DNA of 64,000 nucleotides from Rebecca billardiae RCC1528 (taxonomy: Eukaryota > Protista > Haptophyta): NCBI GenBank assembly GCA_965240325.2, contig OZ251225.1:3596001-3660000 (forward strand), read 5' to 3'. The position numbers and the translations under genes are program-made. Shown here one piece after another: positions 35,430 through 60,143 of this stretch (within the stretch, counting starts at the first letter, position 1; each line of letters starts with the position of its first letter). Under the pieces are notes generated by a model. It had not been told where the DNA came from. It was given only the letters and a program-made list of their open reading frames with translations, and searched no databases.

Positions 35430-36241
35430 TAGTACCCCTCAGGTTTAAGCGTTCGCTTCGCTGGCTACGTGATTGCACGCCCGCTCACGCCGTGACGAGC
35501 GCACCATGGCGGCTCTCTCGCTTGTGGCGCACGGTCGGGGAGCACCCGCGTCTGCGCAGACACACGGCTCGCCCGCAAGTGTGCTGTGTCGCGCACGCGC
35601 GCGCTCGCGCGGCCGGCCATCGCGCACAGACCTGACTGGTCTCACATGCACCAGCATGGTCGTGCACGCACAGCGCCGCTCCGCGCACGCAATAAATTCG
35701 AGCGTGGTGCGCATGCACGTACACTCTGTGTCCCTGGTCCACACACAGCGTGTGAGCTCGTGCTTTGACCACGTGCAGGCGCACCACAGACTTTCGCGCA
35801 GCTGCCGCGCCGGGCCGTGCCAGCGGCTCGACAGGCTCAGCTCGTGGGCAGCGCTCGCTCGATTGCATGCTCCTGCCGCGCAGGGTGCCCAGCTTGCTGC
35901 GCTCGGTGTGTACTGGCGCGCTCGGACGGCACCCCGCGTACGCCTCGGGCCACGCGTGGGAGCCTAGCTCCACGCACGGAGGACTCGCAGGCGCAGGCCG
36001 GCGGCTGCCTCACACGGCTTGGTCGGGAGGCCGCCGCGCGGCTACCGTCGAGCTCGCCGATCGGCTGCACCTACTTTCAGCGCACGCTACCGCCGCCTCG
36101 CGCACGACACGGCAAGGTTGAACACGTGACTGTGGGCGGGCATCAGCCCCAAGTACGCAGCCATCAGCACCACGGCCTTCACCTTCAGCGCCGACGATAG
36201 AGCCGCCGCTTGATTTTATCGCTTAAACTTGAGGGCCACTA
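35430..36241. repeat. Module A, 812-bp MITE-like unit (copies start at 35430, 39353, 43276, 47199, 51122, 55045, 58968)
   Basis: 22-bp imperfect TIRs, no credible ORF, seven direct copies. Confidence 0.88.
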
Positions 36242-36558
36242 AGTCGGAGGCTGCTGAAAACCCGCGTGAGACGTGAGCATCATCGTAGGAGGTGTCGACG
36301 AAGATTCACTCTGACGCGCGCAGTCCGTTTCGACTCTGGCTGGCGCGCGCGCTATATGGCTAGGACGGATCGTGCCGGAGCGCTCGGAGTAGCCGGCTTC
36401 TCCCCGTTGCACGAGACTGTGCTGCTCCATTGGCAACATGACTGGGTTGTCATTCGTAAGCGTCAGTCAGGGACGTGACATGTGATGACCATGGCCTAGG
36501 CCACTGAGACCGCAAGATCAAATCAGCCACAGGAGTTGTGACCTCGAGCGCGAGCGCG

Positions 36559-38590
36559 CGCGCTCGGCACGCCCCCCGCGCGTGTACCGCATGCCCGAGC
36601 CCGCCCTTCAGATGCGCACGGCGCGCGCGCCGACTCGGCGCTTCTCGCTGGCTCTAGCCGCAGCCGCACCTCTCCGTAGCCGTTGGTCGTGACACACCCA
36701 GCTCAGCTTGGTCAGATTCGAGCTCGAGCTCTCGCGCGCGCGACAGTAGAGGCGGGCCGCCGGTGCCATGTGTACGCTCATCGGGGCCGTACCTGGCGCT
36801 GCGCGCCGCGCCGGCGCGCGCGCGTGTGCGCACGCGCCGCAGCAGCCGTGTCGTTGCTTGAGCCGTGAGGCGCCGGCTGATCGGCAGGTCGGGAGGTCGT
36901 GAGATCTGAGCTGAGCCGAAACTCCGGCCGTGGCGGCGGCGCAGGATGAGCGCCGAGCGCGCGCGCGCGCCCTCGCGCTCGGCACGCCCCCCGCGCGTGT
37001 ACCGCGTGCCCGAGCCCGCCCTTCAGATGCGCATGGCGCGCGCGCCGACTCGGCGCTTCTCGCTGGCTCTACCCGCAGCTCTCCGTAGCCGTTGGCCGTG
37101 ACACACCCAGCTCAGCTTGGTCAGATTCGAGCTCGAGCTCTCGCGCGCACGACGGTAGAGGCGGGCCGCCGGTGCCATGTGTACGCTCACCGGGGCCGTA
37201 CCTGGCGCTGCGCGCCGCGCCGGCGCGCGCGCGTGTGCGCACGCGCCGCAGCAGCCGTGTCGTTGCTTGAGCCGTGAGGCGCCGGCTGATCGGCAGGTCG
37301 GGAGGTCGTGAGATCTGAGCTGAGCCGAAACTCCGGCCGTGGCGGCGGCGCAGGATGAGCGCCGAGCGCGCGCGCGCGCCCTCGCGCTCGGCACGCCCCC
37401 CGCGCGTGTACCGCGTGCCCGAGCCCGCCCTTCAGATGCGCATGGCGCGCGCGCCGACTCGGCGCTTCTCGCTGGCTCTACCCGCAGCTCTCCGTAGCCG
37501 TTGGCCGTGACACACCCAGCTCAGCTTGGTCAGATTCGAGCTCGAGCTCTCGCGCGCACGACGGTAGAGGCGGGCCGCCGGTGCCATGTGTACGCTCACC
37601 GGGGCCGTACCTGGCGCTGCGCGCCGCGCCGGCGCGCCAGCTTGCGCGCACGCGCCGCAGCAGCCGTGTTGTTGCCTGAGCCGTGAGGTGCCGGCTGATC
37701 GGCAGGTCGGGAGGTCGTGAGATCTGAGCTGAGCCGAAACTCCGGCCGTGGCGGCGGCGCAGGAGGAGCGCCGAGCGCGCGCGCGCGCCCTCGCGCTCGG
37801 CACGCCCCCCGCGCGTGTACCGCGTGCCCGAGCCCGCCCTTCAGATGCGCACGGCGCGCGCGCCGACTCGGCGCTTCTCGCTGGCTCTAGCCGCAGCCGC
37901 AGCTCTCCGTAGCCGTTGGCCGTGACACACCCAGCTCAGCTTGGTCAGATTCGAGCTCGAGCTCTCGCGCGCGCGACAGTAGAGGCGGGCCGCCGGTGCC
38001 ATGTATACGCTCACTGGGGCCGTACCTGGCACTGCGCGCCGCGCCGGCGCGCCAGCTTGCGCGCACGCGCCGCAGCAGCCGTGTTGTTGCCTGAGCCGTG
38101 AGGCGCCGGCTGATCGGCAGGTCGGGAGGTCGTGAGATCTGAGCTGAGCCGAAACTCCGGCCGTGGCGGCGGCGCAGGAGGAGCGCCGAGCGCGCGCGCG
38201 CGCCCTCGCGCTCGGCACGCCCCCCGCGCGTGTACCGCGTGCCCGAGCCCGCCCTTCAGATGCGCACGGCGCGCGCGCCGACTCGGCGCTTCTCGCTGGC
38301 TCTAGCCGCAGCCGCAGCTCTCCGTAGCCGTTGGCCGTGACACACCCAGCTCAGCTTGGTCAGATTCGAGCTCGAGCTCTCGCGCGCGCGACAGTAGAGG
38401 CGGGCCGCCGGTGCCATGTATACGCTCACTGGGGCCGTACCTGGCACTGCGCGCCGCGCCGGCGCGCCAGCTTGCGCGCACGCGCCGCAGCAGCCGTGTT
38501 GTTGCCTGAGCCGTGAGGCGCCGGCTGATCGGCAGGTCGTGAGGTCGTGTGAGCTGAGCTGAGCCAAACCTCTGGCCATGGTGGTGGCGC
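36559..38590. repeat. Inner satellite of module B: five monomers (415, 409, 409, 415 bp, then a diverged fifth), repeated in all six B modules
   Basis: Monomers start CGCGCTCGGCACGCCCCCC at 36559, 36974, 37383, 37792 and 38207. Confidence 0.93.
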
Positions 38591-41500
38591 GCGGGCAGCT
38601 GTGACCTCAAGTGCGGGCGTGCACGCGCGTCGCACAGCCCTGCATCGACGTTACCGGCATCTGGCTCGGTGAAGTCCGGCCCAAACATATGAGCCCCAGC
38701 ACCATCTCAATGGCTTGGCCGAGCCCGTCGTTCACGGAGAGGTCGTGGCGATCATAGGTCGCTGCCATCGCAGTCTTCGATACGCGCTGACCCTTCCTGT
38801 ATGCCACGGCTAAGCTCAAGTTGGCCATGATCGTCGGCGCCGCTGCTCGCTGTGCGCATGGTCGCACCGTGGGGCTCTCGGCCGCCGGCGGCGGTCGCCC
38901 TGCAGCCATGCACAAGCTGCTTGCCGATTGGTCGGTTACAAGAATCTACTTTTGAATCGCAGCCATCATCCGTCCAAGAGCTCCGGCGACGGCCGCGTGC
39001 GGCGCGGTGGCGGCCGCCTGGGCGACACAGCGCGCGCAGCACCCGGCGTTAGAGCGCAATCGACGCATACAACCTCGAAGAGACAGCGCTAGTGGGTCGT
39101 ACTATCGTGGTTTGCAGCCCTTCTCTCCATGCTCTGCGCATTGCCACCGCCGCGCGCCGCAACGCTTAAGCATCAGCGAGCTCTCGCAAATCACTACGCG
39201 CATGGTCTCCTCCTCGCCCACCAGGGCCGAATGATCGGAGGTCGCGCTGTGGTGGAATACCAACCTAAATATTGTCGTGCGCGTGGTGCAGCCCGGGCGC
39301 CTCAGCGCACCCCTGGCACCAGCGCACTATTTACCTCTCTTTTATTACCACTTAGTACCCCTCAGGTTTAAGCGTTCGCTTCGCTGGCTACGTGATTGCA
39401 CGCCCGCTCACGCCGTGACGAGCGCACCATGGCGGCTCTCTCGCTTGTGGCGCACGGTCGGGGAGCACCCGCGTCTGCGCAGACACACGGCTCGCCCGCA
39501 AGTGTGCTGTGTCGCGCACGCGCGCGCTCGCGCGGCCGGCCATCGCGCACAGACCTGACTGGTCTCACATGCACCAGCATGGTCGTGCACGCACAGCGCC
39601 GCTCCGCGCACGCAATAAATTCGAGCGTGGTGCGCATGCACGTACACTCTGTGTCCCTGGTCCACACACAGCGTGTGAGCTCGTGCTTTGACCACGTGCA
39701 GGCGCACCACAGACTTTCGCGCAGCTGCCGCGCCGGGCCGTGCCAGCGGCTCGACAGGCTCAGCTCGTGGGCAGCGCTCGCTCGATTGCATGCTCCTGCC
39801 GCGCAGGGTGCCCAGCTTGCTGCGCTCGGTGTGTACTGGCGCGCTCGGACGGCACCCCGCGTACGCCTCGGGCCACGCGTGGGAGCCTAGCTCCACGCAC
39901 GGAGGACTCGCAGGCGCAGGCCGGCGGCTGCCTCACACGGCTTGGTCGGGAGGCCGCCGCGCGGCTACCGTCGAGCTCGCCGATCGGCTGCACCTACTTT
40001 CAGCGCACGCTACCGCCGCCTCGCGCACGACACGGCAAGGTTGAACACGTGACTGTGGGCGGGCATCAGCCCCAAGTACGCAGCCATCAGCACCACGGCC
40101 TTCACCTTCAGCGCCGACGATAGAGCCGCCGCTTGATTTTATCGCTTAAACTTGAGGGCCACTAAGTCGGAGGCTGCTGAAAACCCGCGTGAGACGTGAG
40201 CATCATCGTAGGAGGTGTCGACGAAGATTCACTCTGACGCGTGCAGTCCGTTTCGACTCTGGCTGGCGCGCGCGCTATATGGCTAGGACGGATCGTGCCG
40301 GAGCGCTCGGAGTAGCCGGCTTCTCCCCGTTGCACGAGACTGTGCTGCTCCATTGGCAACATGACTGGGTTGTCATTCGTAAGCGTCAGTCAGGGACGTG
40401 ACATGTGATGACCATGGCCTAGGCCACTGAGACCGCAAGATCAAATCAGCCACAGGAGTTGTGACCTCGAGCGCGAGCGCGCGCGCTCGGCACGCCCCCC
40501 GCGCGTGTACCGCATGCCCGAGCCCGCCCTTCAGATGCGCACGGCGCGCGCGCCGACTCGGCGCTTCTCGCTGGCTCTAGCCGCAGCCGCACCTCTCCGT
40601 AGCCGTTGGTCGTGACACACCCAGCTCAGCTTGGTCAGATTCGAGCTCGAGCTCTCGCGCGCGCGACAGTAGAGGCGGGCCGCCGGTGCCATGTGTACGC
40701 TCATCGGGGCCGTACCTGGCGCTGCGCGCCGCGCCGGCGCGCGCGCGTGTGCGCACGCGCCGCAGCAGCCGTGTCGTTGCTTGAGCCGTGAGGCGCCGGC
40801 TGATCGGCAGGTCGGGAGGTCGTGAGATCTGAGCTGAGCCGAAACTCCGGCCGTGGCGGCGGCGCAGGATGAGCGCCGAGCGCGCGCGCGCGCCCTCGCG
40901 CTCGGCACGCCCCCCGCGCGTGTACCGCGTGCCCGAGCCCGCCCTTCAGATGCGCATGGCGCGCGCGCCGACTCGGCGCTTCTCGCTGGCTCTACCCGCA
41001 GCTCTCCGTAGCCGTTGGCCGTGACACACCCAGCTCAGCTTGGTCAGATTCGAGCTCGAGCTCTCGCGCGCACGACGGTAGAGGCGGGCCGCCGGTGCCA
41101 TGTGTACGCTCACCGGGGCCGTACCTGGCGCTGCGCGCCGCGCCGGCGCGCGCGCGTGTGCGCACGCGCCGCAGCAGCCGTGTCGTTGCTTGAGCCGTGA
41201 GGCGCCGGCTGATCGGCAGGTCGGGAGGTCGTGAGATCTGAGCTGAGCCGAAACTCCGGCCGTGGCGGCGGCGCAGGATGAGCGCCGAGCGCGCGCGCGC
41301 GCCCTCGCGCTCGGCACGCCCCCCGCGCGTGTACCGCGTGCCCGAGCCCGCCCTTCAGATGCGCATGGCGCGCGCGCCGACTCGGCGCTTCTCGCTGGCT
41401 CTACCCGCAGCTCTCCGTAGCCGTTGGCCGTGACACACCCAGCTCAGCTTGGTCAGATTCGAGCTCGAGCTCTCGCGCGCACGACGGTAGAGGCGGGCCG

Positions 41501-44500
41501 CCGGTGCCATGTGTACGCTCACCGGGGCCGTACCTGGCGCTGCGCGCCGCGCCGGCGCGCCAGCTTGCGCGCACGCGCCGCAGCAGCCGTGTTGTTGCCT
41601 GAGCCGTGAGGTGCCGGCTGATCGGCAGGTCGGGAGGTCGTGAGATCTGAGCTGAGCCGAAACTCCGGCCGTGGCGGCGGCGCAGGAGGAGCGCCGAGCG
41701 CGCGCGCGCGCCCTCGCGCTCGGCACGCCCCCCGCGCGTGTACCGCGTGCCCGAGCCCGCCCTTCAGATGCGCACGGCGCGCGCGCCGACTCGGCGCTTC
41801 TCGCTGGCTCTAGCCGCAGCCGCAGCTCTCCGTAGCCGTTGGCCGTGACACACCCAGCTCAGCTTGGTCAGATTCGAGCTCGAGCTCTCGCGCGCGCGAC
41901 AGTAGAGGCGGGCCGCCGGTGCCATGTATACGCTCACTGGGGCCGTACCTGGCACTGCGCGCCGCGCCGGCGCGCCAGCTTGCGCGCACGCGCCGCAGCA
42001 GCCGTGTTGTTGCCTGAGCCGTGAGGCGCCGGCTGATCGGCAGGTCGGGAGGTCGTGAGATCTGAGCTGAGCCGAAACTCCGGCCGTGGCGGCGGCGCAG
42101 GAGGAGCGCCGAGCGCGCGCGCGCGCCCTCGCGCTCGGCACGCCCCCCGCGCGTGTACCGCGTGCCCGAGCCCGCCCTTCAGATGCGCACGGCGCGCGCG
42201 CCGACTCGGCGCTTCTCGCTGGCTCTAGCCGCAGCCGCAGCTCTCCGTAGCCGTTGGCCGTGACACACCCAGCTCAGCTTGGTCAGATTCGAGCTCGAGC
42301 TCTCGCGCGCGCGACAGTAGAGGCGGGCCGCCGGTGCCATGTATACGCTCACTGGGGCCGTACCTGGCACTGCGCGCCGCGCCGGCGCGCCAGCTTGCGC
42401 GCACGCGCCGCAGCAGCCGTGTTGTTGCCTGAGCCGTGAGGCGCCGGCTGATCGGCAGGTCGTGAGGTCGTGTGAGCTGAGCTGAGCCAAACCTCTGGCC
42501 ATGGTGGTGGCGCGCGGGCAGCTGTGACCTCAAGTGCGGGCGTGCACGCGCGTCGCACAGCCCTGCATCGACGTTACCGGCATCTGGCTCGGTGAAGTCC
42601 GGCCCAAACATATGAGCCCCAGCACCATCTCAATGGCTTGGCCGAGCCCGTCGTTCACGGAGAGGTCGTGGCGATCATAGGTCGCTGCCATCGCAGTCTT
42701 CGATACGCGCTGACCCTTCCTGTATGCCACGGCTAAGCTCAAGTTGGCCATGATCGTCGGCGCCGCTGCTCGCTGTGCGCATGGTCGCACCGTGGGGCTC
42801 TCGGCCGCCGGCGGCGGTCGCCCTGCAGCCATGCACAAGCTGCTTGCCGATTGGTCGGTTACAAGAATCTACTTTTGAATCGCAGCCATCATCCGTCCAA
42901 GAGCTCCGGCGACGGCCGCGTGCGGCGCGGTGGCGGCCGCCTGGGCGACACAGCGCGCGCAGCACCCGGCGTTAGAGCGCAATCGACGCATACAACCTCG
43001 AAGAGACAGCGCTAGTGGGTCGTACTATCGTGGTTTGCAGCCCTTCTCTCCATGCTCTGCGCATTGCCACCGCCGCGCGCCGCAACGCTTAAGCATCAGC
43101 GAGCTCTCGCAAATCACTACGCGCATGGTCTCCTCCTCGCCCACCAGGGCCGAATGATCGGAGGTCGCGCTGTGGTGGAATACCAACCTAAATATTGTCG
43201 TGCGCGTGGTGCAGCCCGGGCGCCTCAGCGCACCCCTGGCACCAGCGCACTATTTACCTCTCTTTTATTACCACTTAGTACCCCTCAGGTTTAAGCGTTC
43301 GCTTCGCTGGCTACGTGATTGCACGCCCGCTCACGCCGTGACGAGCGCACCATGGCGGCTCTCTCGCTTGTGGCGCACGGTCGGGGAGCACCCGCGTCTG
43401 CGCAGACACACGGCTCGCCCGCAAGTGTGCTGTGTCGCGCACGCGCGCGCTCGCGCGGCCGGCCATCGCGCACAGACCTGACTGGTCTCACATGCACCAG
43501 CATGGTCGTGCACGCACAGCGCCGCTCCGCGCACGCAATAAATTCGAGCGTGGTGCGCATGCACGTACACTCTGTGTCCCTGGTCCACACACAGCGTGTG
43601 AGCTCGTGCTTTGACCACGTGCAGGCGCACCACAGACTTTCGCGCAGCTGCCGCGCCGGGCCGTGCCAGCGGCTCGACAGGCTCAGCTCGTGGGCAGCGC
43701 TCGCTCGATTGCATGCTCCTGCCGCGCAGGGTGCCCAGCTTGCTGCGCTCGGTGTGTACTGGCGCGCTCGGACGGCACCCCGCGTACGCCTCGGGCCACG
43801 CGTGGGAGCCTAGCTCCACGCACGGAGGACTCGCAGGCGCAGGCCGGCGGCTGCCTCACACGGCTTGGTCGGGAGGCCGCCGCGCGGCTACCGTCGAGCT
43901 CGCCGATCGGCTGCACCTACTTTCAGCGCACGCTACCGCCGCCTCGCGCACGACACGGCAAGGTTGAACACGTGACTGTGGGCGGGCATCAGCCCCAAGT
44001 ACGCAGCCATCAGCACCACGGCCTTCACCTTCAGCGCCGACGATAGAGCCGCCGCTTGATTTTATCGCTTAAACTTGAGGGCCACTAAGTCGGAGGCTGC
44101 TGAAAACCCGCGTGAGACGTGAGCATCATCGTAGGAGGTGTCGACGAAGATTCACTCTGACGCGTGCAGTCCGTTTCGACTCTGGCTGGCGCGCGCGCTA
44201 TATGGCTAGGACGGATCGTGCCGGAGCGCTCGGAGTAGCCGGCTTCTCCCCGTTGCACGAGACTGTGCTGCTCCATTGGCAACATGACTGGGTTGTCATT
44301 CGTAAGCGTCAGTCAGGGACGTGACATGTGATGACCATGGCCTAGGCCACTGAGACCGCAAGATCAAATCAGCCACAGGAGTTGTGACCTCGAGCGCGAG
44401 CGCGCGCGCTCGGCACGCCCCCCGCGCGTGTACCGCATGCCCGAGCCCGCCCTTCAGATGCGCACGGCGCGCGCGCCGACTCGGCGCTTCTCGCTGGCTC

Positions 44501-47500
44501 TAGCCGCAGCCGCACCTCTCCGTAGCCGTTGGTCGTGACACACCCAGCTCAGCTTGGTCAGATTCGAGCTCGAGCTCTCGCGCGCGCGACAGTAGAGGCG
44601 GGCCGCCGGTGCCATGTGTACGCTCATCGGGGCCGTACCTGGCGCTGCGCGCCGCGCCGGCGCGCGCGCGTGTGCGCACGCGCCGCAGCAGCCGTGTCGT
44701 TGCTTGAGCCGTGAGGCGCCGGCTGATCGGCAGGTCGGGAGGTCGTGAGATCTGAGCTGAGCCGAAACTCCGGCCGTGGCGGCGGCGCAGGATGAGCGCC
44801 GAGCGCGCGCGCGCGCCCTCGCGCTCGGCACGCCCCCCGCGCGTGTACCGCGTGCCCGAGCCCGCCCTTCAGATGCGCATGGCGCGCGCGCCGACTCGGC
44901 GCTTCTCGCTGGCTCTACCCGCAGCTCTCCGTAGCCGTTGGCCGTGACACACCCAGCTCAGCTTGGTCAGATTCGAGCTCGAGCTCTCGCGCGCACGACG
45001 GTAGAGGCGGGCCGCCGGTGCCATGTGTACGCTCACCGGGGCCGTACCTGGCGCTGCGCGCCGCGCCGGCGCGCGCGCGTGTGCGCACGCGCCGCAGCAG
45101 CCGTGTCGTTGCTTGAGCCGTGAGGCGCCGGCTGATCGGCAGGTCGGGAGGTCGTGAGATCTGAGCTGAGCCGAAACTCCGGCCGTGGCGGCGGCGCAGG
45201 ATGAGCGCCGAGCGCGCGCGCGCGCCCTCGCGCTCGGCACGCCCCCCGCGCGTGTACCGCGTGCCCGAGCCCGCCCTTCAGATGCGCATGGCGCGCGCGC
45301 CGACTCGGCGCTTCTCGCTGGCTCTACCCGCAGCTCTCCGTAGCCGTTGGCCGTGACACACCCAGCTCAGCTTGGTCAGATTCGAGCTCGAGCTCTCGCG
45401 CGCACGACGGTAGAGGCGGGCCGCCGGTGCCATGTGTACGCTCACCGGGGCCGTACCTGGCGCTGCGCGCCGCGCCGGCGCGCCAGCTTGCGCGCACGCG
45501 CCGCAGCAGCCGTGTTGTTGCCTGAGCCGTGAGGTGCCGGCTGATCGGCAGGTCGGGAGGTCGTGAGATCTGAGCTGAGCCGAAACTCCGGCCGTGGCGG
45601 CGGCGCAGGAGGAGCGCCGAGCGCGCGCGCGCGCCCTCGCGCTCGGCACGCCCCCCGCGCGTGTACCGCGTGCCCGAGCCCGCCCTTCAGATGCGCACGG
45701 CGCGCGCGCCGACTCGGCGCTTCTCGCTGGCTCTAGCCGCAGCCGCAGCTCTCCGTAGCCGTTGGCCGTGACACACCCAGCTCAGCTTGGTCAGATTCGA
45801 GCTCGAGCTCTCGCGCGCGCGACAGTAGAGGCGGGCCGCCGGTGCCATGTATACGCTCACTGGGGCCGTACCTGGCACTGCGCGCCGCGCCGGCGCGCCA
45901 GCTTGCGCGCACGCGCCGCAGCAGCCGTGTTGTTGCCTGAGCCGTGAGGCGCCGGCTGATCGGCAGGTCGGGAGGTCGTGAGATCTGAGCTGAGCCGAAA
46001 CTCCGGCCGTGGCGGCGGCGCAGGAGGAGCGCCGAGCGCGCGCGCGCGCCCTCGCGCTCGGCACGCCCCCCGCGCGTGTACCGCGTGCCCGAGCCCGCCC
46101 TTCAGATGCGCACGGCGCGCGCGCCGACTCGGCGCTTCTCGCTGGCTCTAGCCGCAGCCGCAGCTCTCCGTAGCCGTTGGCCGTGACACACCCAGCTCAG
46201 CTTGGTCAGATTCGAGCTCGAGCTCTCGCGCGCGCGACAGTAGAGGCGGGCCGCCGGTGCCATGTATACGCTCACTGGGGCCGTACCTGGCACTGCGCGC
46301 CGCGCCGGCGCGCCAGCTTGCGCGCACGCGCCGCAGCAGCCGTGTTGTTGCCTGAGCCGTGAGGCGCCGGCTGATCGGCAGGTCGTGAGGTCGTGTGAGC
46401 TGAGCTGAGCCAAACCTCTGGCCATGGTGGTGGCGCGCGGGCAGCTGTGACCTCAAGTGCGGGCGTGCACGCGCGTCGCACAGCCCTGCATCGACGTTAC
46501 CGGCATCTGGCTCGGTGAAGTCCGGCCCAAACATATGAGCCCCAGCACCATCTCAATGGCTTGGCCGAGCCCGTCGTTCACGGAGAGGTCGTGGCGATCA
46601 TAGGTCGCTGCCATCGCAGTCTTCGATACGCGCTGACCCTTCCTGTATGCCACGGCTAAGCTCAAGTTGGCCATGATCGTCGGCGCCGCTGCTCGCTGTG
46701 CGCATGGTCGCACCGTGGGGCTCTCGGCCGCCGGCGGCGGTCGCCCTGCAGCCATGCACAAGCTGCTTGCCGATTGGTCGGTTACAAGAATCTACTTTTG
46801 AATCGCAGCCATCATCCGTCCAAGAGCTCCGGCGACGGCCGCGTGCGGCGCGGTGGCGGCCGCCTGGGCGACACAGCGCGCGCAGCACCCGGCGTTAGAG
46901 CGCAATCGACGCATACAACCTCGAAGAGACAGCGCTAGTGGGTCGTACTATCGTGGTTTGCAGCCCTTCTCTCCATGCTCTGCGCATTGCCACCGCCGCG
47001 CGCCGCAACGCTTAAGCATCAGCGAGCTCTCGCAAATCACTACGCGCATGGTCTCCTCCTCGCCCACCAGGGCCGAATGATCGGAGGTCGCGCTGTGGTG
47101 GAATACCAACCTAAATATTGTCGTGCGCGTGGTGCAGCCCGGGCGCCTCAGCGCACCCCTGGCACCAGCGCACTATTTACCTCTCTTTTATTACCACTTA
47201 GTACCCCTCAGGTTTAAGCGTTCGCTTCGCTGGCTACGTGATTGCACGCCCGCTCACGCCGTGACGAGCGCACCATGGCGGCTCTCTCGCTTGTGGCGCA
47301 CGGTCGGGGAGCACCCGCGTCTGCGCAGACACACGGCTCGCCCGCAAGTGTGCTGTGTCGCGCACGCGCGCGCTCGCGCGGCCGGCCATCGCGCACAGAC
47401 CTGACTGGTCTCACATGCACCAGCATGGTCGTGCACGCACAGCGCCGCTCCGCGCACGCAATAAATTCGAGCGTGGTGCGCATGCACGTACACTCTGTGT

Positions 47501-50500
47501 CCCTGGTCCACACACAGCGTGTGAGCTCGTGCTTTGACCACGTGCAGGCGCACCACAGACTTTCGCGCAGCTGCCGCGCCGGGCCGTGCCAGCGGCTCGA
47601 CAGGCTCAGCTCGTGGGCAGCGCTCGCTCGATTGCATGCTCCTGCCGCGCAGGGTGCCCAGCTTGCTGCGCTCGGTGTGTACTGGCGCGCTCGGACGGCA
47701 CCCCGCGTACGCCTCGGGCCACGCGTGGGAGCCTAGCTCCACGCACGGAGGACTCGCAGGCGCAGGCCGGCGGCTGCCTCACACGGCTTGGTCGGGAGGC
47801 CGCCGCGCGGCTACCGTCGAGCTCGCCGATCGGCTGCACCTACTTTCAGCGCACGCTACCGCCGCCTCGCGCACGACACGGCAAGGTTGAACACGTGACT
47901 GTGGGCGGGCATCAGCCCCAAGTACGCAGCCATCAGCACCACGGCCTTCACCTTCAGCGCCGACGATAGAGCCGCCGCTTGATTTTATCGCTTAAACTTG
48001 AGGGCCACTAAGTCGGAGGCTGCTGAAAACCCGCGTGAGACGTGAGCATCATCGTAGGAGGTGTCGACGAAGATTCACTCTGACGCGTGCAGTCCGTTTC
48101 GACTCTGGCTGGCGCGCGCGCTATATGGCTAGGACGGATCGTGCCGGAGCGCTCGGAGTAGCCGGCTTCTCCCCGTTGCACGAGACTGTGCTGCTCCATT
48201 GGCAACATGACTGGGTTGTCATTCGTAAGCGTCAGTCAGGGACGTGACATGTGATGACCATGGCCTAGGCCACTGAGACCGCAAGATCAAATCAGCCACA
48301 GGAGTTGTGACCTCGAGCGCGAGCGCGCGCGCTCGGCACGCCCCCCGCGCGTGTACCGCATGCCCGAGCCCGCCCTTCAGATGCGCACGGCGCGCGCGCC
48401 GACTCGGCGCTTCTCGCTGGCTCTAGCCGCAGCCGCACCTCTCCGTAGCCGTTGGTCGTGACACACCCAGCTCAGCTTGGTCAGATTCGAGCTCGAGCTC
48501 TCGCGCGCGCGACAGTAGAGGCGGGCCGCCGGTGCCATGTGTACGCTCATCGGGGCCGTACCTGGCGCTGCGCGCCGCGCCGGCGCGCGCGCGTGTGCGC
48601 ACGCGCCGCAGCAGCCGTGTCGTTGCTTGAGCCGTGAGGCGCCGGCTGATCGGCAGGTCGGGAGGTCGTGAGATCTGAGCTGAGCCGAAACTCCGGCCGT
48701 GGCGGCGGCGCAGGATGAGCGCCGAGCGCGCGCGCGCGCCCTCGCGCTCGGCACGCCCCCCGCGCGTGTACCGCGTGCCCGAGCCCGCCCTTCAGATGCG
48801 CATGGCGCGCGCGCCGACTCGGCGCTTCTCGCTGGCTCTACCCGCAGCTCTCCGTAGCCGTTGGCCGTGACACACCCAGCTCAGCTTGGTCAGATTCGAG
48901 CTCGAGCTCTCGCGCGCACGACGGTAGAGGCGGGCCGCCGGTGCCATGTGTACGCTCACCGGGGCCGTACCTGGCGCTGCGCGCCGCGCCGGCGCGCGCG
49001 CGTGTGCGCACGCGCCGCAGCAGCCGTGTCGTTGCTTGAGCCGTGAGGCGCCGGCTGATCGGCAGGTCGGGAGGTCGTGAGATCTGAGCTGAGCCGAAAC
49101 TCCGGCCGTGGCGGCGGCGCAGGATGAGCGCCGAGCGCGCGCGCGCGCCCTCGCGCTCGGCACGCCCCCCGCGCGTGTACCGCGTGCCCGAGCCCGCCCT
49201 TCAGATGCGCATGGCGCGCGCGCCGACTCGGCGCTTCTCGCTGGCTCTACCCGCAGCTCTCCGTAGCCGTTGGCCGTGACACACCCAGCTCAGCTTGGTC
49301 AGATTCGAGCTCGAGCTCTCGCGCGCACGACGGTAGAGGCGGGCCGCCGGTGCCATGTGTACGCTCACCGGGGCCGTACCTGGCGCTGCGCGCCGCGCCG
49401 GCGCGCCAGCTTGCGCGCACGCGCCGCAGCAGCCGTGTTGTTGCCTGAGCCGTGAGGTGCCGGCTGATCGGCAGGTCGGGAGGTCGTGAGATCTGAGCTG
49501 AGCCGAAACTCCGGCCGTGGCGGCGGCGCAGGAGGAGCGCCGAGCGCGCGCGCGCGCCCTCGCGCTCGGCACGCCCCCCGCGCGTGTACCGCGTGCCCGA
49601 GCCCGCCCTTCAGATGCGCACGGCGCGCGCGCCGACTCGGCGCTTCTCGCTGGCTCTAGCCGCAGCCGCAGCTCTCCGTAGCCGTTGGCCGTGACACACC
49701 CAGCTCAGCTTGGTCAGATTCGAGCTCGAGCTCTCGCGCGCGCGACAGTAGAGGCGGGCCGCCGGTGCCATGTATACGCTCACTGGGGCCGTACCTGGCA
49801 CTGCGCGCCGCGCCGGCGCGCCAGCTTGCGCGCACGCGCCGCAGCAGCCGTGTTGTTGCCTGAGCCGTGAGGCGCCGGCTGATCGGCAGGTCGGGAGGTC
49901 GTGAGATCTGAGCTGAGCCGAAACTCCGGCCGTGGCGGCGGCGCAGGAGGAGCGCCGAGCGCGCGCGCGCGCCCTCGCGCTCGGCACGCCCCCCGCGCGT
50001 GTACCGCGTGCCCGAGCCCGCCCTTCAGATGCGCACGGCGCGCGCGCCGACTCGGCGCTTCTCGCTGGCTCTAGCCGCAGCCGCAGCTCTCCGTAGCCGT
50101 TGGCCGTGACACACCCAGCTCAGCTTGGTCAGATTCGAGCTCGAGCTCTCGCGCGCGCGACAGTAGAGGCGGGCCGCCGGTGCCATGTATACGCTCACTG
50201 GGGCCGTACCTGGCACTGCGCGCCGCGCCGGCGCGCCAGCTTGCGCGCACGCGCCGCAGCAGCCGTGTTGTTGCCTGAGCCGTGAGGCGCCGGCTGATCG
50301 GCAGGTCGTGAGGTCGTGTGAGCTGAGCTGAGCCAAACCTCTGGCCATGGTGGTGGCGCGCGGGCAGCTGTGACCTCAAGTGCGGGCGTGCACGCGCGTC
50401 GCACAGCCCTGCATCGACGTTACCGGCATCTGGCTCGGTGAAGTCCGGCCCAAACATATGAGCCCCAGCACCATCTCAATGGCTTGGCCGAGCCCGTCGT

Positions 50501-53500
50501 TCACGGAGAGGTCGTGGCGATCATAGGTCGCTGCCATCGCAGTCTTCGATACGCGCTGACCCTTCCTGTATGCCACGGCTAAGCTCAAGTTGGCCATGAT
50601 CGTCGGCGCCGCTGCTCGCTGTGCGCATGGTCGCACCGTGGGGCTCTCGGCCGCCGGCGGCGGTCGCCCTGCAGCCATGCACAAGCTGCTTGCCGATTGG
50701 TCGGTTACAAGAATCTACTTTTGAATCGCAGCCATCATCCGTCCAAGAGCTCCGGCGACGGCCGCGTGCGGCGCGGTGGCGGCCGCCTGGGCGACACAGC
50801 GCGCGCAGCACCCGGCGTTAGAGCGCAATCGACGCATACAACCTCGAAGAGACAGCGCTAGTGGGTCGTACTATCGTGGTTTGCAGCCCTTCTCTCCATG
50901 CTCTGCGCATTGCCACCGCCGCGCGCCGCAACGCTTAAGCATCAGCGAGCTCTCGCAAATCACTACGCGCATGGTCTCCTCCTCGCCCACCAGGGCCGAA
51001 TGATCGGAGGTCGCGCTGTGGTGGAATACCAACCTAAATATTGTCGTGCGCGTGGTGCAGCCCGGGCGCCTCAGCGCACCCCTGGCACCAGCGCACTATT
51101 TACCTCTCTTTTATTACCACTTAGTACCCCTCAGGTTTAAGCGTTCGCTTCGCTGGCTACGTGATTGCACGCCCGCTCACGCCGTGACGAGCGCACCATG
51201 GCGGCTCTCTCGCTTGTGGCGCACGGTCGGGGAGCACCCGCGTCTGCGCAGACACACGGCTCGCCCGCAAGTGTGCTGTGTCGCGCACGCGCGCGCTCGC
51301 GCGGCCGGCCATCGCGCACAGACCTGACTGGTCTCACATGCACCAGCATGGTCGTGCACGCACAGCGCCGCTCCGCGCACGCAATAAATTCGAGCGTGGT
51401 GCGCATGCACGTACACTCTGTGTCCCTGGTCCACACACAGCGTGTGAGCTCGTGCTTTGACCACGTGCAGGCGCACCACAGACTTTCGCGCAGCTGCCGC
51501 GCCGGGCCGTGCCAGCGGCTCGACAGGCTCAGCTCGTGGGCAGCGCTCGCTCGATTGCATGCTCCTGCCGCGCAGGGTGCCCAGCTTGCTGCGCTCGGTG
51601 TGTACTGGCGCGCTCGGACGGCACCCCGCGTACGCCTCGGGCCACGCGTGGGAGCCTAGCTCCACGCACGGAGGACTCGCAGGCGCAGGCCGGCGGCTGC
51701 CTCACACGGCTTGGTCGGGAGGCCGCCGCGCGGCTACCGTCGAGCTCGCCGATCGGCTGCACCTACTTTCAGCGCACGCTACCGCCGCCTCGCGCACGAC
51801 ACGGCAAGGTTGAACACGTGACTGTGGGCGGGCATCAGCCCCAAGTACGCAGCCATCAGCACCACGGCCTTCACCTTCAGCGCCGACGATAGAGCCGCCG
51901 CTTGATTTTATCGCTTAAACTTGAGGGCCACTAAGTCGGAGGCTGCTGAAAACCCGCGTGAGACGTGAGCATCATCGTAGGAGGTGTCGACGAAGATTCA
52001 CTCTGACGCGTGCAGTCCGTTTCGACTCTGGCTGGCGCGCGCGCTATATGGCTAGGACGGATCGTGCCGGAGCGCTCGGAGTAGCCGGCTTCTCCCCGTT
52101 GCACGAGACTGTGCTGCTCCATTGGCAACATGACTGGGTTGTCATTCGTAAGCGTCAGTCAGGGACGTGACATGTGATGACCATGGCCTAGGCCACTGAG
52201 ACCGCAAGATCAAATCAGCCACAGGAGTTGTGACCTCGAGCGCGAGCGCGCGCGCTCGGCACGCCCCCCGCGCGTGTACCGCATGCCCGAGCCCGCCCTT
52301 CAGATGCGCACGGCGCGCGCGCCGACTCGGCGCTTCTCGCTGGCTCTAGCCGCAGCCGCACCTCTCCGTAGCCGTTGGTCGTGACACACCCAGCTCAGCT
52401 TGGTCAGATTCGAGCTCGAGCTCTCGCGCGCGCGACAGTAGAGGCGGGCCGCCGGTGCCATGTGTACGCTCATCGGGGCCGTACCTGGCGCTGCGCGCCG
52501 CGCCGGCGCGCGCGCGTGTGCGCACGCGCCGCAGCAGCCGTGTCGTTGCTTGAGCCGTGAGGCGCCGGCTGATCGGCAGGTCGGGAGGTCGTGAGATCTG
52601 AGCTGAGCCGAAACTCCGGCCGTGGCGGCGGCGCAGGATGAGCGCCGAGCGCGCGCGCGCGCCCTCGCGCTCGGCACGCCCCCCGCGCGTGTACCGCGTG
52701 CCCGAGCCCGCCCTTCAGATGCGCATGGCGCGCGCGCCGACTCGGCGCTTCTCGCTGGCTCTACCCGCAGCTCTCCGTAGCCGTTGGCCGTGACACACCC
52801 AGCTCAGCTTGGTCAGATTCGAGCTCGAGCTCTCGCGCGCACGACGGTAGAGGCGGGCCGCCGGTGCCATGTGTACGCTCACCGGGGCCGTACCTGGCGC
52901 TGCGCGCCGCGCCGGCGCGCGCGCGTGTGCGCACGCGCCGCAGCAGCCGTGTCGTTGCTTGAGCCGTGAGGCGCCGGCTGATCGGCAGGTCGGGAGGTCG
53001 TGAGATCTGAGCTGAGCCGAAACTCCGGCCGTGGCGGCGGCGCAGGATGAGCGCCGAGCGCGCGCGCGCGCCCTCGCGCTCGGCACGCCCCCCGCGCGTG
53101 TACCGCGTGCCCGAGCCCGCCCTTCAGATGCGCATGGCGCGCGCGCCGACTCGGCGCTTCTCGCTGGCTCTACCCGCAGCTCTCCGTAGCCGTTGGCCGT
53201 GACACACCCAGCTCAGCTTGGTCAGATTCGAGCTCGAGCTCTCGCGCGCACGACGGTAGAGGCGGGCCGCCGGTGCCATGTGTACGCTCACCGGGGCCGT
53301 ACCTGGCGCTGCGCGCCGCGCCGGCGCGCCAGCTTGCGCGCACGCGCCGCAGCAGCCGTGTTGTTGCCTGAGCCGTGAGGTGCCGGCTGATCGGCAGGTC
53401 GGGAGGTCGTGAGATCTGAGCTGAGCCGAAACTCCGGCCGTGGCGGCGGCGCAGGAGGAGCGCCGAGCGCGCGCGCGCGCCCTCGCGCTCGGCACGCCCC

Positions 53501-56500
53501 CCGCGCGTGTACCGCGTGCCCGAGCCCGCCCTTCAGATGCGCACGGCGCGCGCGCCGACTCGGCGCTTCTCGCTGGCTCTAGCCGCAGCCGCAGCTCTCC
53601 GTAGCCGTTGGCCGTGACACACCCAGCTCAGCTTGGTCAGATTCGAGCTCGAGCTCTCGCGCGCGCGACAGTAGAGGCGGGCCGCCGGTGCCATGTATAC
53701 GCTCACTGGGGCCGTACCTGGCACTGCGCGCCGCGCCGGCGCGCCAGCTTGCGCGCACGCGCCGCAGCAGCCGTGTTGTTGCCTGAGCCGTGAGGCGCCG
53801 GCTGATCGGCAGGTCGGGAGGTCGTGAGATCTGAGCTGAGCCGAAACTCCGGCCGTGGCGGCGGCGCAGGAGGAGCGCCGAGCGCGCGCGCGCGCCCTCG
53901 CGCTCGGCACGCCCCCCGCGCGTGTACCGCGTGCCCGAGCCCGCCCTTCAGATGCGCACGGCGCGCGCGCCGACTCGGCGCTTCTCGCTGGCTCTAGCCG
54001 CAGCCGCAGCTCTCCGTAGCCGTTGGCCGTGACACACCCAGCTCAGCTTGGTCAGATTCGAGCTCGAGCTCTCGCGCGCGCGACAGTAGAGGCGGGCCGC
54101 CGGTGCCATGTATACGCTCACTGGGGCCGTACCTGGCACTGCGCGCCGCGCCGGCGCGCCAGCTTGCGCGCACGCGCCGCAGCAGCCGTGTTGTTGCCTG
54201 AGCCGTGAGGCGCCGGCTGATCGGCAGGTCGTGAGGTCGTGTGAGCTGAGCTGAGCCAAACCTCTGGCCATGGTGGTGGCGCGCGGGCAGCTGTGACCTC
54301 AAGTGCGGGCGTGCACGCGCGTCGCACAGCCCTGCATCGACGTTACCGGCATCTGGCTCGGTGAAGTCCGGCCCAAACATATGAGCCCCAGCACCATCTC
54401 AATGGCTTGGCCGAGCCCGTCGTTCACGGAGAGGTCGTGGCGATCATAGGTCGCTGCCATCGCAGTCTTCGATACGCGCTGACCCTTCCTGTATGCCACG
54501 GCTAAGCTCAAGTTGGCCATGATCGTCGGCGCCGCTGCTCGCTGTGCGCATGGTCGCACCGTGGGGCTCTCGGCCGCCGGCGGCGGTCGCCCTGCAGCCA
54601 TGCACAAGCTGCTTGCCGATTGGTCGGTTACAAGAATCTACTTTTGAATCGCAGCCATCATCCGTCCAAGAGCTCCGGCGACGGCCGCGTGCGGCGCGGT
54701 GGCGGCCGCCTGGGCGACACAGCGCGCGCAGCACCCGGCGTTAGAGCGCAATCGACGCATACAACCTCGAAGAGACAGCGCTAGTGGGTCGTACTATCGT
54801 GGTTTGCAGCCCTTCTCTCCATGCTCTGCGCATTGCCACCGCCGCGCGCCGCAACGCTTAAGCATCAGCGAGCTCTCGCAAATCACTACGCGCATGGTCT
54901 CCTCCTCGCCCACCAGGGCCGAATGATCGGAGGTCGCGCTGTGGTGGAATACCAACCTAAATATTGTCGTGCGCGTGGTGCAGCCCGGGCGCCTCAGCGC
55001 ACCCCTGGCACCAGCGCACTATTTACCTCTCTTTTATTACCACTTAGTACCCCTCAGGTTTAAGCGTTCGCTTCGCTGGCTACGTGATTGCACGCCCGCT
55101 CACGCCGTGACGAGCGCACCATGGCGGCTCTCTCGCTTGTGGCGCACGGTCGGGGAGCACCCGCGTCTGCGCAGACACACGGCTCGCCCGCAAGTGTGCT
55201 GTGTCGCGCACGCGCGCGCTCGCGCGGCCGGCCATCGCGCACAGACCTGACTGGTCTCACATGCACCAGCATGGTCGTGCACGCACAGCGCCGCTCCGCG
55301 CACGCAATAAATTCGAGCGTGGTGCGCATGCACGTACACTCTGTGTCCCTGGTCCACACACAGCGTGTGAGCTCGTGCTTTGACCACGTGCAGGCGCACC
55401 ACAGACTTTCGCGCAGCTGCCGCGCCGGGCCGTGCCAGCGGCTCGACAGGCTCAGCTCGTGGGCAGCGCTCGCTCGATTGCATGCTCCTGCCGCGCAGGG
55501 TGCCCAGCTTGCTGCGCTCGGTGTGTACTGGCGCGCTCGGACGGCACCCCGCGTACGCCTCGGGCCACGCGTGGGAGCCTAGCTCCACGCACGGAGGACT
55601 CGCAGGCGCAGGCCGGCGGCTGCCTCACACGGCTTGGTCGGGAGGCCGCCGCGCGGCTACCGTCGAGCTCGCCGATCGGCTGCACCTACTTTCAGCGCAC
55701 GCTACCGCCGCCTCGCGCACGACACGGCAAGGTTGAACACGTGACTGTGGGCGGGCATCAGCCCCAAGTACGCAGCCATCAGCACCACGGCCTTCACCTT
55801 CAGCGCCGACGATAGAGCCGCCGCTTGATTTTATCGCTTAAACTTGAGGGCCACTAAGTCGGAGGCTGCTGAAAACCCGCGTGAGACGTGAGCATCATCG
55901 TAGGAGGTGTCGACGAAGATTCACTCTGACGCGCGCAGTCCGTTTCGACTCTGGCTGGCGCGCGCGCTATATGGCTAGGACGGATCGTGCCGGAGCGCTC
56001 GGAGTAGCCGGCTTCTCCCCGTTGCACGAGACTGTGCTGCTCCATTGGCAACATGACTGGGTTGTCATTCGTAAGCGTCAGTCAGGGACGTGACATGTGA
56101 TGACCATGGCCTAGGCCACTGAGACCGCAAGATCAAATCAGCCACAGGAGTTGTGACCTCGAGCGCGAGCGCGCGCGCTCGGCACGCCCCCCGCGCGTGT
56201 ACCGCATGCCCGAGCCCGCCCTTCAGATGCGCACGGCGCGCGCGCCGACTCGGCGCTTCTCGCTGGCTCTAGCCGCAGCCGCACCTCTCCGTAGCCGTTG
56301 GTCGTGACACACCCAGCTCAGCTTGGTCAGATTCGAGCTCGAGCTCTCGCGCGCGCGACAGTAGAGGCGGGCCGCCGGTGCCATGTGTACGCTCATCGGG
56401 GCCGTACCTGGCGCTGCGCGCCGCGCCGGCGCGCGCGCGTGTGCGCACGCGCCGCAGCAGCCGTGTCGTTGCTTGAGCCGTGAGGCGCCGGCTGATCGGC

Positions 56501-59500
56501 AGGTCGGGAGGTCGTGAGATCTGAGCTGAGCCGAAACTCCGGCCGTGGCGGCGGCGCAGGATGAGCGCCGAGCGCGCGCGCGCGCCCTCGCGCTCGGCAC
56601 GCCCCCCGCGCGTGTACCGCGTGCCCGAGCCCGCCCTTCAGATGCGCATGGCGCGCGCGCCGACTCGGCGCTTCTCGCTGGCTCTACCCGCAGCTCTCCG
56701 TAGCCGTTGGCCGTGACACACCCAGCTCAGCTTGGTCAGATTCGAGCTCGAGCTCTCGCGCGCACGACGGTAGAGGCGGGCCGCCGGTGCCATGTGTACG
56801 CTCACCGGGGCCGTACCTGGCGCTGCGCGCCGCGCCGGCGCGCGCGCGTGTGCGCACGCGCCGCAGCAGCCGTGTCGTTGCTTGAGCCGTGAGGCGCCGG
56901 CTGATCGGCAGGTCGGGAGGTCGTGAGATCTGAGCTGAGCCGAAACTCCGGCCGTGGCGGCGGCGCAGGATGAGCGCCGAGCGCGCGCGCGCGCCCTCGC
57001 GCTCGGCACGCCCCCCGCGCGTGTACCGCGTGCCCGAGCCCGCCCTTCAGATGCGCATGGCGCGCGCGCCGACTCGGCGCTTCTCGCTGGCTCTACCCGC
57101 AGCTCTCCGTAGCCGTTGGCCGTGACACACCCAGCCCAGCTTGGTCAGATTCGAGCTCGAGCTCTCGCGCGCACGACGGTAGAGGCGGGCCGCCGGTGCC
57201 ATGTGTACGCTCACCGGGGCCGTACCTGGCGCTGCGCGCCGCGCCGGCGCGCCAGCTTGCGCGCACGCGCCGCAGCAGCCGTGTTGTTGCCTGAGCCGTG
57301 AGGTGCCGGCTGATCGGCAGGTCGGGAGGTCGTGAGATCTGAGCTGAGCCGAAACTCCGGCCGTGGCGGCGGCGCAGGAGGAGCGCCGAGCGCGCGCGCG
57401 CGCCCTCGCGCTCGGCACGCCCCCCGCGCGTGTACCGCGTGCCCGAGCCCGCCCTTCAGATGCGCACGGCGCGCGCGCCGACTCGGCGCTTCTCGCTGGC
57501 TCTAGCCGCAGCCGCAGCTCTCCGTAGCCGTTGGCCGTGACACACCCAGCTCAGCTTGGTCAGATTCGAGCTCGAGCTCTCGCGCGCGCGACAGTAGAGG
57601 CGGGCCGCCGGTGCCATGTATACGCTCACTGGGGCCGTACCTGGCACTGCGCGCCGCGCCGGCGCGCCAGCTTGCGCGCACGCGCCGCAGCAGCCGTGTT
57701 GTTGCCTGAGCCGTGAGGCGCCGGCTGATCGGCAGGTCGGGAGGTCGTGAGATCTGAGCTGAGCCGAAACTCCGGCCGTGGCGGCGGCGCAGGAGGAGCG
57801 CCGAGCGCGCGCGCGCGCCCTCGCGCTCGGCACGCCCCCCGCGCGTGTACCGCGTGCCCGAGCCCGCCCTTCAGATGCGCACGGCGCGCGCGCCGACTCG
57901 GCGCTTCTCGCTGGCTCTAGCCGCAGCCGCAGCTCTCCGTAGCCGTTGGCCGTGACACACCCAGCTCAGCTTGGTCAGATTCGAGCTCGAGCTCTCGCGC
58001 GCGCGACAGTAGAGGCGGGCCGCCGGTGCCATGTATACGCTCACTGGGGCCGTACCTGGCACTGCGCGCCGCGCCGGCGCGCCAGCTTGCGCGCACGCGC
58101 CGCAGCAGCCGTGTTGTTGCCTGAGCCGTGAGGCGCCGGCTGATCGGCAGGTCGTGAGGTCGTGTGAGCTGAGCTGAGCCAAACCTCTGGCCATGGTGGT
58201 GGCGCGCGGGCAGCTGTGACCTCAAGTGCGGGCGTGCACGCGCGTCGCACAGCCCTGCATCGACGTTACCGGCATCTGGCTCGGTGAAGTCCGGCCCAAA
58301 CATATGAGCCCCAGCACCATCTCAATGGCTTGGCCGAGCCCGTCGTTCACGGAGAGGTCGTGGCGATCATAGGTCGCTGCCATCGCAGTCTTCGATACGC
58401 GCTGACCCTTCCTGTATGCCACGGCTAAGCTCAAGTTGGCCATGATCGTCGGCGCCGCTGCTCGCTGTGCGCATGGTCGCACCGTGGGGCTCTCGGCCGC
58501 CGGCGGCGGTCGCCCTGCAGCCATGCACAAGCTGCTTGCCGATTGGTCGGTTACAAGAATCTACTTTTGAATCGCAGCCATCATCCGTCCAAGAGCTCCG
58601 GCGACGGCCGCGTGCGGCGCGGTGGCGGCCGCCTGGGCGACACAGCGCGCGCAGCACCCGGCGTTAGAGCGCAATCGACGCATACAACCTCGAAGAGACA
58701 GCGCTAGTGGGTCGTACTATCGTGGTTTGCAGCCCTTCTCTCCATGCTCTGCGCATTGCCACCGCCGCGCGCCGCAACGCTTAAGCATCAGCGAGCTCTC
58801 GCAAATCACTACGCGCATGGTCTCCTCCTCGCCCACCAGGGCCGAATGATCGGAGGTCGCGCTGTGGTGGAATACCAACCTAAATATTGTCGTGCGCGTG
58901 GTGCAGCCCGGGCGCCTCAGCGCACCCCTGGCACCAGCGCACTATTTACCTCTCTTTTATTACCACTTAGTACCCCTCAGGTTTAAGCGTTCGCTTCGCT
59001 GGCTACGTGATTGCACGCCCGCTCACGCCGTGACGAGCGCACCATGGCGGCTCTCTCGCTTGTGGCGCACGGTCGGGGAGCACCCGCGTCTGCGCAGACA
59101 CACGGCTCGCCCGCAAGTGTGCTGTGTCGCGCACGCGCGCGCTCGCGCGGCCGGCCATCGCGCACAGACCTGACTGGTCTCACATGCACCAGCATGGTCG
59201 TGCACGCACAGCGCCGCTCCGCGCACGCAATAAATTCGAGCGTGGTGCGCATGCACGTACACTCTGTGTCCCTGGTCCACACACAGCGTGTGAGCTCGTG
59301 CTTTGACCACGTGCAGGCGCACCACAGACTTTCGCGCAGCTGCCGCGCCGGGCCGTGCCAGCGGCTCGACAGGCTCAGCTCGTGGGCAGCGCTCGCTCGA
59401 TTGCATGCTCCTGCCGCGCAGGGTGCCCAGCTTGCTGCGCTCGGTGTGTACTGGCGCGCTCGGACGGCACCCCGCGTACGCCTCGGGCCACGCGTGGGAG

Positions 59501-59781
59501 CCTAGCTCCACGCACGGAGGACTCGCAGGCGCAGGCCGGCGGCTGCCTCACACGGCTTGGTCGGGAGGCCGCCGCGCGGCTACCGTCGAGCTCGCCGATC
59601 GGCTGCACCTACTTTCAGCGCACGCTACCGCCGCCTCGCGCACGACACGGCAAGGTTGAACACGTGACTGTGGGCGGGCATCAGCCCCAAGTACGCAGCC
59701 ATCAGCACCACGGCCTTCACCTTCAGCGCCGACGATAGAGCCGCCGCTTGATTTTATCGCTTAAACTTGAGGGCCACTATA

Positions 59782-60143
59782 CGACCAGATTTTCTATTTC
59801 TCGACTTTCTTCACTCGGTCCTGATTCAGACCGGACTGACGTGATCAGACCGGACCGCTGTGCAGTCCAGACGCGCGGAACCGATATCGCTCTAGACATG
59901 ACACGCTAAACTAGCTCACGCCCTCGTGCGCTCGCACGTGCTACGCCCGTCGCCGCTGCGGCCGCTGCCGGTACTGCATCGACCGTGCTGTCGTTGAGTG
60001 CTCGTGTATACGCCTACGTCTCTCGCCTCTCACCCTCGACCGTGCCGATCGCCCGTCACCAGTCCGCTCCCACAGGCGCGGGACCGGACGAGCCCGTGCG
60101 AAACGCCCGCGTCACCAACAACCATCACAACCTCTTCACAATA
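59782..60143 (+). repeat. Right part of the interrupted 5' LTR
   Basis: Matches 62401-62762 with no differences seen by eye. Confidence 0.92.

Follow-up and report, generated by a model that had tools for sequence, protein, structure and literature searches.

KolobokP DNA transposons of animals consist of an internal region (INT) between a pair of long terminal direct repeats (LTDRs), each of which has its own short terminal inverted repeats (TIRs), and they also occur as solo LTDRs, as (LTDR-INT)n-LTDR multimers under one target duplication and as LTDR-(INT)n-LTDR forms (PMC9587614). Excision of the LTDR has been inferred for these elements, unequal crossover or circles have been proposed for the multimers, and multimerisation has been ascribed to a co-encoded His-Me nuclease that induces unequal crossover; in 2022 the build was called unlike that of any other DNA transposon (PMC9587614). 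For tandem transposon arrays in Drosophila (Bari1, hobo, P and R1), unequal exchange expands head-to-tail elements, and the idea has been put forward that intact TIRs inside arrays invite breaks (McGurk and Barbash 2018, PMC5932611). Here we analysed 64,000 nucleotides from the haptophyte alga Rebecca billardiae RCC1528 (assembly GCA_965240325.2, contig OZ251225.1, positions 3,596,001 to 3,660,000; hereafter the window), which contain an array of seven copies of an 812-bp repeat, A, alternating with six copies of a 3111-bp segment, B. The block is most probably a single insertion of a non-autonomous LTDR-INT-LTDR element of the Tc1/IS630 type that was mobilised in trans and multimerised by unequal exchange, at least partly at this site. 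The LTDR build has previously been published only for the unrelated KolobokP, and the family reported here is a second, independent case; a full-text literature search returned no description of Tc1/mariner elements with long direct end-repeats.

Periodicity was assessed in a self-comparison of the window, offset by 3923 bases. Identity is near perfect from 35430 to 55856, and the repeated block (35430-59779) measures 6 x 3923 + 812 = 24350 bp, which corresponds to A(BA)6, with only three internal differences across the array (at 36319, 52011 and 53213). The array sits 28 bp into the 5′ long terminal repeat (LTR) of a small LTR element. Its features and those of the host element, in window positions, are as follows.

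35428-35429: left copy of the TA target-site duplication; the empty site reads CTCTACGACC in the sister LTR and in six of six other LTR copies
35430-36241, plus strand: A1, 812-bp LTDR with 22-bp TIRs (19/22); A2 to A7 are identical to A1
39353-40164, 43276-44087, 47199-48010, 51122-51933 and 55045-55856, plus strand: A2 to A6
58968-59779, plus strand: A7, the last LTDR, whose right TIR is the right end of the entire insertion
36242-39352, plus strand: B1, the 3111-bp internally deleted INT, recognised by the 3923 period, the constant B ends and the match to the INT of a full-length copy, L041
40165-43275, 44088-47198, 48011-51121, 51934-55044 and 55857-58967, plus strand: B2 to B6
36548-38590: satellite block in B1, five monomers of 409-415 bp, recurring every +3923 in each B
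38685-38858, minus strand: decayed remnant of a transposase N terminus (residues 4-61, 64% identical, without a start codon)
42608-42781, 46531-46704, 50454-50627, 54377-54550 and 58300-58473, minus strand: further copies of the transposase remnant
59780-59781: right copy of the TA target-site duplication
35402-62762, plus strand: host LTR element of 3.0 kb (array excluded), bounded by LTRs of 390 bp that have TG...TA ends
35402-35429 plus 59782-60143: host 5′ LTR, split by the array
62373-62762: host 3′ LTR (the sister LTR)
35397-35401 and 62763-62767: 5-bp duplication CTACT of the host element

Each A starts TAGTACCCCTCAGG and terminates CTTGAGGGCCACTA, and 19 of its first 22 bases agree with the reverse-complemented last 22 (chance about 1e-8); these TIRs are present in every A, including at the outer ends of A1 and A7. 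The outer ends of the array read CTCTA/TAGT... on the left and ...ACTA/TACGACC on the right. Internal A copies have ...CCACT on their left and AGTCGG... on their right (CT and AG), with no TA. At the corresponding site the sister LTR at 62373 reads CTCTACGACC, with a single TA, as do all six intact genome copies of the host LTR site. TA is therefore a true 2-bp duplication of the target and lies outside the mobile unit, whose own termini are TAGT...ACTA; insertion took place at a TA of the small LTR element’s 5′ LTR, and this TA was duplicated. The six further intact copies of the host site lie on contigs 5, 7, 17 and 19, and the two LTRs of the host element itself are 99.5% identical and end in TG...TA, not TG...CA.

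These comparisons uphold a preliminary description of the locus in every detail that they cover: the shift comparison confirms seven direct 812-bp A copies with 22-bp imperfect TIRs alternating with six 3111-bp B copies, internal A copies are indeed flanked by CT and AG, and the TA duplication is found at the outermost ends only, with an empty site in the sister LTR to which six further LTR copies can now be added. That the array encodes no transposase also holds, as the open reading frames (ORFs) of A and B have no match in Pfam. Inverted ends are absent from B itself, and its likeness to A is limited to GC-rich low complexity.

The window lies on contig 7 of a GC-rich genome assembled into 41 contigs (72 Mb). 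Searching this assembly for solo A, A-B-A and arrays together with their target duplications, as the preliminary description had proposed, yielded about 44 copies of A at 98.8-100% identity, distributed over 11 loci with several A in direct orientation and about 8 solo sites. The multi-A loci have 2, 3, 7, 2, 2, 4, 2, 2, 6, 2 and 2 A copies, so that four of the 11 are multimers (7, 6, 4 and 3). At all 11, TA borders the outermost A copies on either side, within flanking DNA that is otherwise unrelated; because TA makes up 1.9% of window dinucleotides (chance about 4e-4 per locus), these flanks are not a product of chance. Among the solo copies, five have TA on both flanks and two others have one flank altered; two older, degraded copies, about 95% identical to A, likewise have TA on the right end. 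The ends of B (AGTCGG...CCACT) are identical at every locus, and B differs in length among loci chiefly in the number of satellite monomers. No element besides A was found in a genome search for the TIR that allowed up to two mismatches, and metagenome scans returned nothing for the TIR or for a transposase profile. We conclude that A is the LTDR of a young Tc1/IS630-type DNA transposon family. The near-identity of the copies suggests recent activity.

The full-length copy, L041 (contig 11, locus 80400-89400, with the element at 81400-88276 on the minus strand), has two A copies that are 98.8-98.9% identical to A of the window and enclose a 5253-bp internal region. The latter contains 7.3 satellite monomers of 415 bp and, between the two A copies and on the strand opposite to them, an ORF of 438 amino acids (L041:2300-3616; contig 11, 82699-84012); no other gene, and no independent second ORF of 130 amino acids or more, was found in it. 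The N-terminal half of the 438-amino-acid protein matches the NCBIfam IS630 transposase model (E 9e-8, below the curated cut-off) and its C-terminal part matches Pfam DDE_3 (E 3.5e-4, also below the cut-off), and its nearest protein atlas clusters are Tc1-like transposases. The motif WPS.SPDL..IE..W, around the third catalytic residue, is common to this protein and Sleeping Beauty, and comparison of a two-sequence profile with PDB gave nothing beyond that motif. A paralogue with 38% identity keeps the motifs FFTDSKYF, FQQD.ASPH and DLSLIEH.W (D207, D324 and E366) unchanged. The second D is separated from E by 41 residues; the spacing is 34 in Tc1 and Sleeping Beauty. The ORF is a predicted Tc1-type DDE transposase, encoded by a relative that has the same ends as the array.

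Comparison with this copy also reveals what B is. B consists of 303 bp, five satellite monomers of about 410 bp and a decayed, 58-codon start of the transposase gene, and it matches the internal region of L041 apart from a gap of about 1.2 kb that represents the remainder of that gene. Transposase residues 4-61 (64% identity, no start codon) recur in all B copies that the family has, the six of the window included; a protein search of the genome with the 438-amino-acid sequence located the full gene only once. B is therefore the element’s own deleted internal region and not captured cargo. Divergence between L041 and the window is uneven: they are 98.7-98.9% identical in A and the first 303 bp of B, and 87% identical in a 762-bp segment by the transposase start (window 38591-39352), throughout which the non-autonomous copies agree among themselves at 96.5-100%. 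This mosaic suggests recombination between lineages or homogenisation of the end-repeats.

The preliminary description had called a TA duplication with YAGT termini typical of Tc1/mariner/pogo, and the Tc1/mariner-type affiliation is borne out by 11 of 11 loci, by the empty sites and by the transposase matches of L041. An autonomous partner, for which it had suggested a search, has the same A repeats and the predicted 438-amino-acid Tc1/IS630-type transposase; duplications of 4-6 bp with an LTR-type partner, the outcome that would have spoken for a different kind of element, were not what was found. Its view of A-B-A as a non-autonomous TIR unit stands, but B was misread as cargo, being a deleted INT with a transposase remnant, and A serves as the family’s long terminal direct repeat rather than as an independent TIR module of a composite transposon.

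Unit variants bear on how the array grew. In the subfamily with the 3923-bp unit, which comprises the window and loci C7a, C22 and C5, only seven sites vary. At unit position 890, the two edge units of the window array have C and the four adjacent inner units have T; outgroup copies identify C as ancestral and T as derived. Units 2-5 are identical over 3923 bp and unit 6 has one private change, which gives at least three distinguishable unit types. Two derived bases are common to C7a, with two B units, and C22, with one, and the pairing of monomers with multimers as sister loci (C22 with C7a, and C5 with the window) implies that unit number changes faster than sequence. The pattern at position 890 points to repeated local duplication of an inner unit, from which it would be expected. 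We infer unequal homologous exchange between the 812-bp repeats or between whole units as the simplest mechanism, and expansion by recombination between direct repeats, as envisaged in the preliminary description, would be the simplest reading of this pattern.

We propose that the L041 transposase, or a lost close variant of it, would mobilise A-B-A and solo A in trans by cutting the outermost TIRs, and that (A-B)6-A would have grown, at least partly in place, through unequal exchange in which the 812-bp repeats or entire units provided the homology. Solo A could be the reciprocal product of such exchange, as proposed for KolobokP. Transposase cuts at internal TIRs may add breaks that feed unequal exchange; if such a break were simply rejoined, A would be lost and B-TA-B left.

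Joints of this last kind occur in a 28.3-kb insertion on contig 15, which lies under a single TA duplication and has the order A B A B A BBB A BB A BB A. Wherever two B copies abut in it, the joint reads CCACT-TA-AGTCGG. The A/B joints never show two TAs per side, as insertion of A into B-TA-B would leave, and the direction of change is thus loss of A, not gain. The excision chemistry of Tc1/mariner-type elements predicts a 2-nt remnant (PMC2170065); with A itself ending in TA, the 2-nt overhangs of the flanks would pair and ligate to leave exactly one TA. The joints fit excision of A by transposase, and a 2-bp microhomology deletion would give an identical joint. The final pair of A-BB units may stem from a single event that was copied. 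Since TA forms the ends of the element, excision is predicted to leave an unusually clean scar that would be easily scored.

A bolder proposal, which we regard as possible but doubtful, is that the LTDR build represents a convergent strategy for in-place copying: the element’s own transposase would cut internal TIRs, out-of-register repair from the sister chromatid would add units, and simple rejoining would give INT-TA-INT, with no dedicated nuclease involved, in contrast to what has been proposed for KolobokP. If true, this would provide a direct route from DNA transposon to macrosatellite, and the arrays would be a store of mobilisable monomers.

Several points weigh against the reading of the block as a trans-mobilised insertion that multimerised here by unequal exchange. 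Position 890 falls at a CpG, and its derived T is also found in the contig-5 monomer, which might reflect parallel mutation or transfer between loci. The copy number is that of the assembly, in which four identical inner units are not countable from sequence, and unequal exchange, break-induced repair and circle re-integration give indistinguishable sequence. Transposase binding and mobility of the element are predictions; the family matches of the transposase fall below curated cut-offs, and a single-sequence AlphaFold model was useless (pLDDT 36) and lends the fold no support. Finally, in the 762 bp adjoining the gene start, the non-autonomous copies all show 13% divergence from L041, the only full-length copy, which is therefore not their direct parent.

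Growth elsewhere is an alternative that concerns only the place of growth: the multimer would have been built from circular A+B by rolling-circle copying, or taken from a multimeric donor, and inserted ready-made through its outermost TIRs. One TA duplication does enclose the entire array, any left TIR could make up a transposable unit with a right TIR downstream of it, the derived T that the contig-5 monomer shares at position 890 speaks for exchange or common descent between loci, and circle models have been discussed for KolobokP (PMC9587614). We nevertheless consider this unlikely, as edge units that keep the ancestral base around four adjacent derived inner units show the pattern of local inner-unit duplication, and the sister relationships of monomers and multimers (C22/C7a and C5/window) show unit number changing faster than sequence. 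That the number of units is an assembly artefact, with fewer or more than six at the true locus, is quite improbable: three distinguishable unit types occur in a fixed order, and the 72-Mb assembly, which comprises 41 contigs, contains at other loci multimers of 2, 3 and 9 internal regions whose units differ in length, even if the identity of units 2-5 over 3923 bp makes their number dependent on read length and depth.

The nature of the element can be read in two other ways, both of which seem to us very hard to sustain. For a true composite transposon, in which two independent small TIR elements (A) carry unrelated host DNA (B), it can be said that A occurs alone with TA duplications and that its loss between B copies fits excision; yet the same two B ends recur at every locus and in the transposase-bearing copy, B holds a remnant of the L041 transposase, A has no family-matched ORF, and the internal A/B joints do not have the TA duplication that insertion of A would leave. 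This makes the composite reading highly improbable. The long direct terminal repeats, solo repeats and repeat-sharing arrays resemble those of LTR elements, which would suit a non-autonomous LTR or tyrosine-recombinase retroelement with terminal-repeat retrotransposon in miniature (TRIM)-like tandem arrays of repeat and internal region. We give this least credence of all, because the empty sites show a 2-bp TA target duplication and not one of 4-6 bp, the 22-bp TIRs end in TAGT...ACTA rather than TG...CA, neither a primer-binding site nor a polypurine tract adjoins A, and the full-length copy encodes a DDE transposase only.

Like KolobokP, the family has the LTDR-INT-LTDR layout with TIRs in each LTDR, solo repeats, multimers and abutted internal regions. 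It differs in its Tc1/IS630-type transposase (Kolobok superfamily in KolobokP), in its TA duplication and TAGT...ACTA termini (3-5-bp duplication and RR...YY termini), in the absence of a His-Me finger nuclease or second gene from L041, in the length of the LTDR (812 bp, as against about 450 or 660 bp), in INT-INT joints that retain exactly TA (loss of 3-4 bp in KolobokP) and in its host, an alga rather than animals. The array’s element thus resembles KolobokP in layout but is not a member, differing in transposase type, nuclease and duplication length. With classical Tc1/mariner/IS630 elements and their miniature inverted-repeat derivatives (Tc1, Sleeping Beauty, ISY100 and Stowaway) it shares the TA duplication, short TIRs, a DDE transposase whose N-terminal part would bind DNA, and the occurrence of non-autonomous derivatives produced by deletion; unlike them, it has both inverted ends within each of two long direct repeats, element ends that are themselves TA, the 41-residue D-to-E spacing and frequent tandem multimers. 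Tandem arrays of TRIM and LTR retrotransposons show the same alternation of repeat and internal region, with shared and solo repeats, but here there is no reverse transcription, and the 2-bp TA duplication, 22-bp TIRs and DDE transposase partner set the family apart.

The same build and the same derived forms in another superfamily, in an alga and without a nuclease indicate that the architecture seems to have arisen more than once, and that direct repeats alone, perhaps aided by transposase cuts, may suffice for multimerisation. The multimers would be an early step from transposon to tandem satellite. Given its near-identical copies and one apparently intact transposase gene, the LTDR family may still be active.

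The protein search with the 438-amino-acid transposase also recovered intact ORFs of paralogues, numbering at least 23 with 37% identity, and a further two with 29%. Many are in tandem: four on contig 7 (3999 bp apart), three on contig 30 (4832 bp) and six on contig 1 (8.5-11.5 kb). Part of the contig-7 array, which lies near 2.673-2.686 Mb, was read (L057, 2676000-2682500); its units, identical over 2500 bp, comprise an intact 433-amino-acid transposase ORF and five 417-bp satellite monomers, leaving no room for an end-repeat. They are joined as CTGCTCACT-TA-AGTGAGCAG, a 9-bp inverted repeat around one TA. This single TA between units is a double-insertion signature, which likens the paralogue array to the Drosophila arrays. 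The window units, unlike Drosophila arrays, share one LTDR and have no target duplication between them, and because the direct repeats supply homology no double insertion is needed there. The satellite periods of the two families are alike (409-415 bp at window 36548-38590 and 417-419 bp at L057:2832-4927), whereas the transposases are only 38% identical; the satellites themselves reach no more than about 60% identity in GC-rich DNA, which is too little to judge homology.

Genome scans with the Pfam DDE_3, DDE_1, mariner and Tc3 HTH models gave matches only on contigs 31 and 26. The former (L037, 418619-422056) is a single-copy IS630-like gene of 460 amino acids with DDE_3 (E 3e-18) and HTH_32 matches; the latter (L038, 646973-650323) is a single-copy pogo-type DDE_1 match within a 783-amino-acid open frame. 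Both were rejected as partners of the array, there being no A- or B-like DNA and no matching ends. Having neither recognisable inverted ends nor any DNA that ties them to A or B, the two may represent transposase genes that are domesticated or stand alone.

Insertions in or adjoining (TA)n tracts were observed on contig 11 (1122824), contig 14 (2166751) and contig 3 (3891132 and 175819). Speculatively, an element that ends in TA and inserts at TA would leave TATATA on excision, and repeat visits might lengthen such tracts. A spacing of 12.95 kb between A copies on contig 11 was considered as a possible autonomous element and rejected, as it reflects a tandem segmental duplication that includes a solo A and a kinase gene. 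The 12.95-kb segment (L031 and L036, 1120824-1138588) is present in tandem at least three times, with A at 1122824, 1135774 and 1148724, and holds, besides the solo A within a (TA)n tract, a gene whose product has a protein kinase domain (L031:7127-8515, Pfam E 7e-39).

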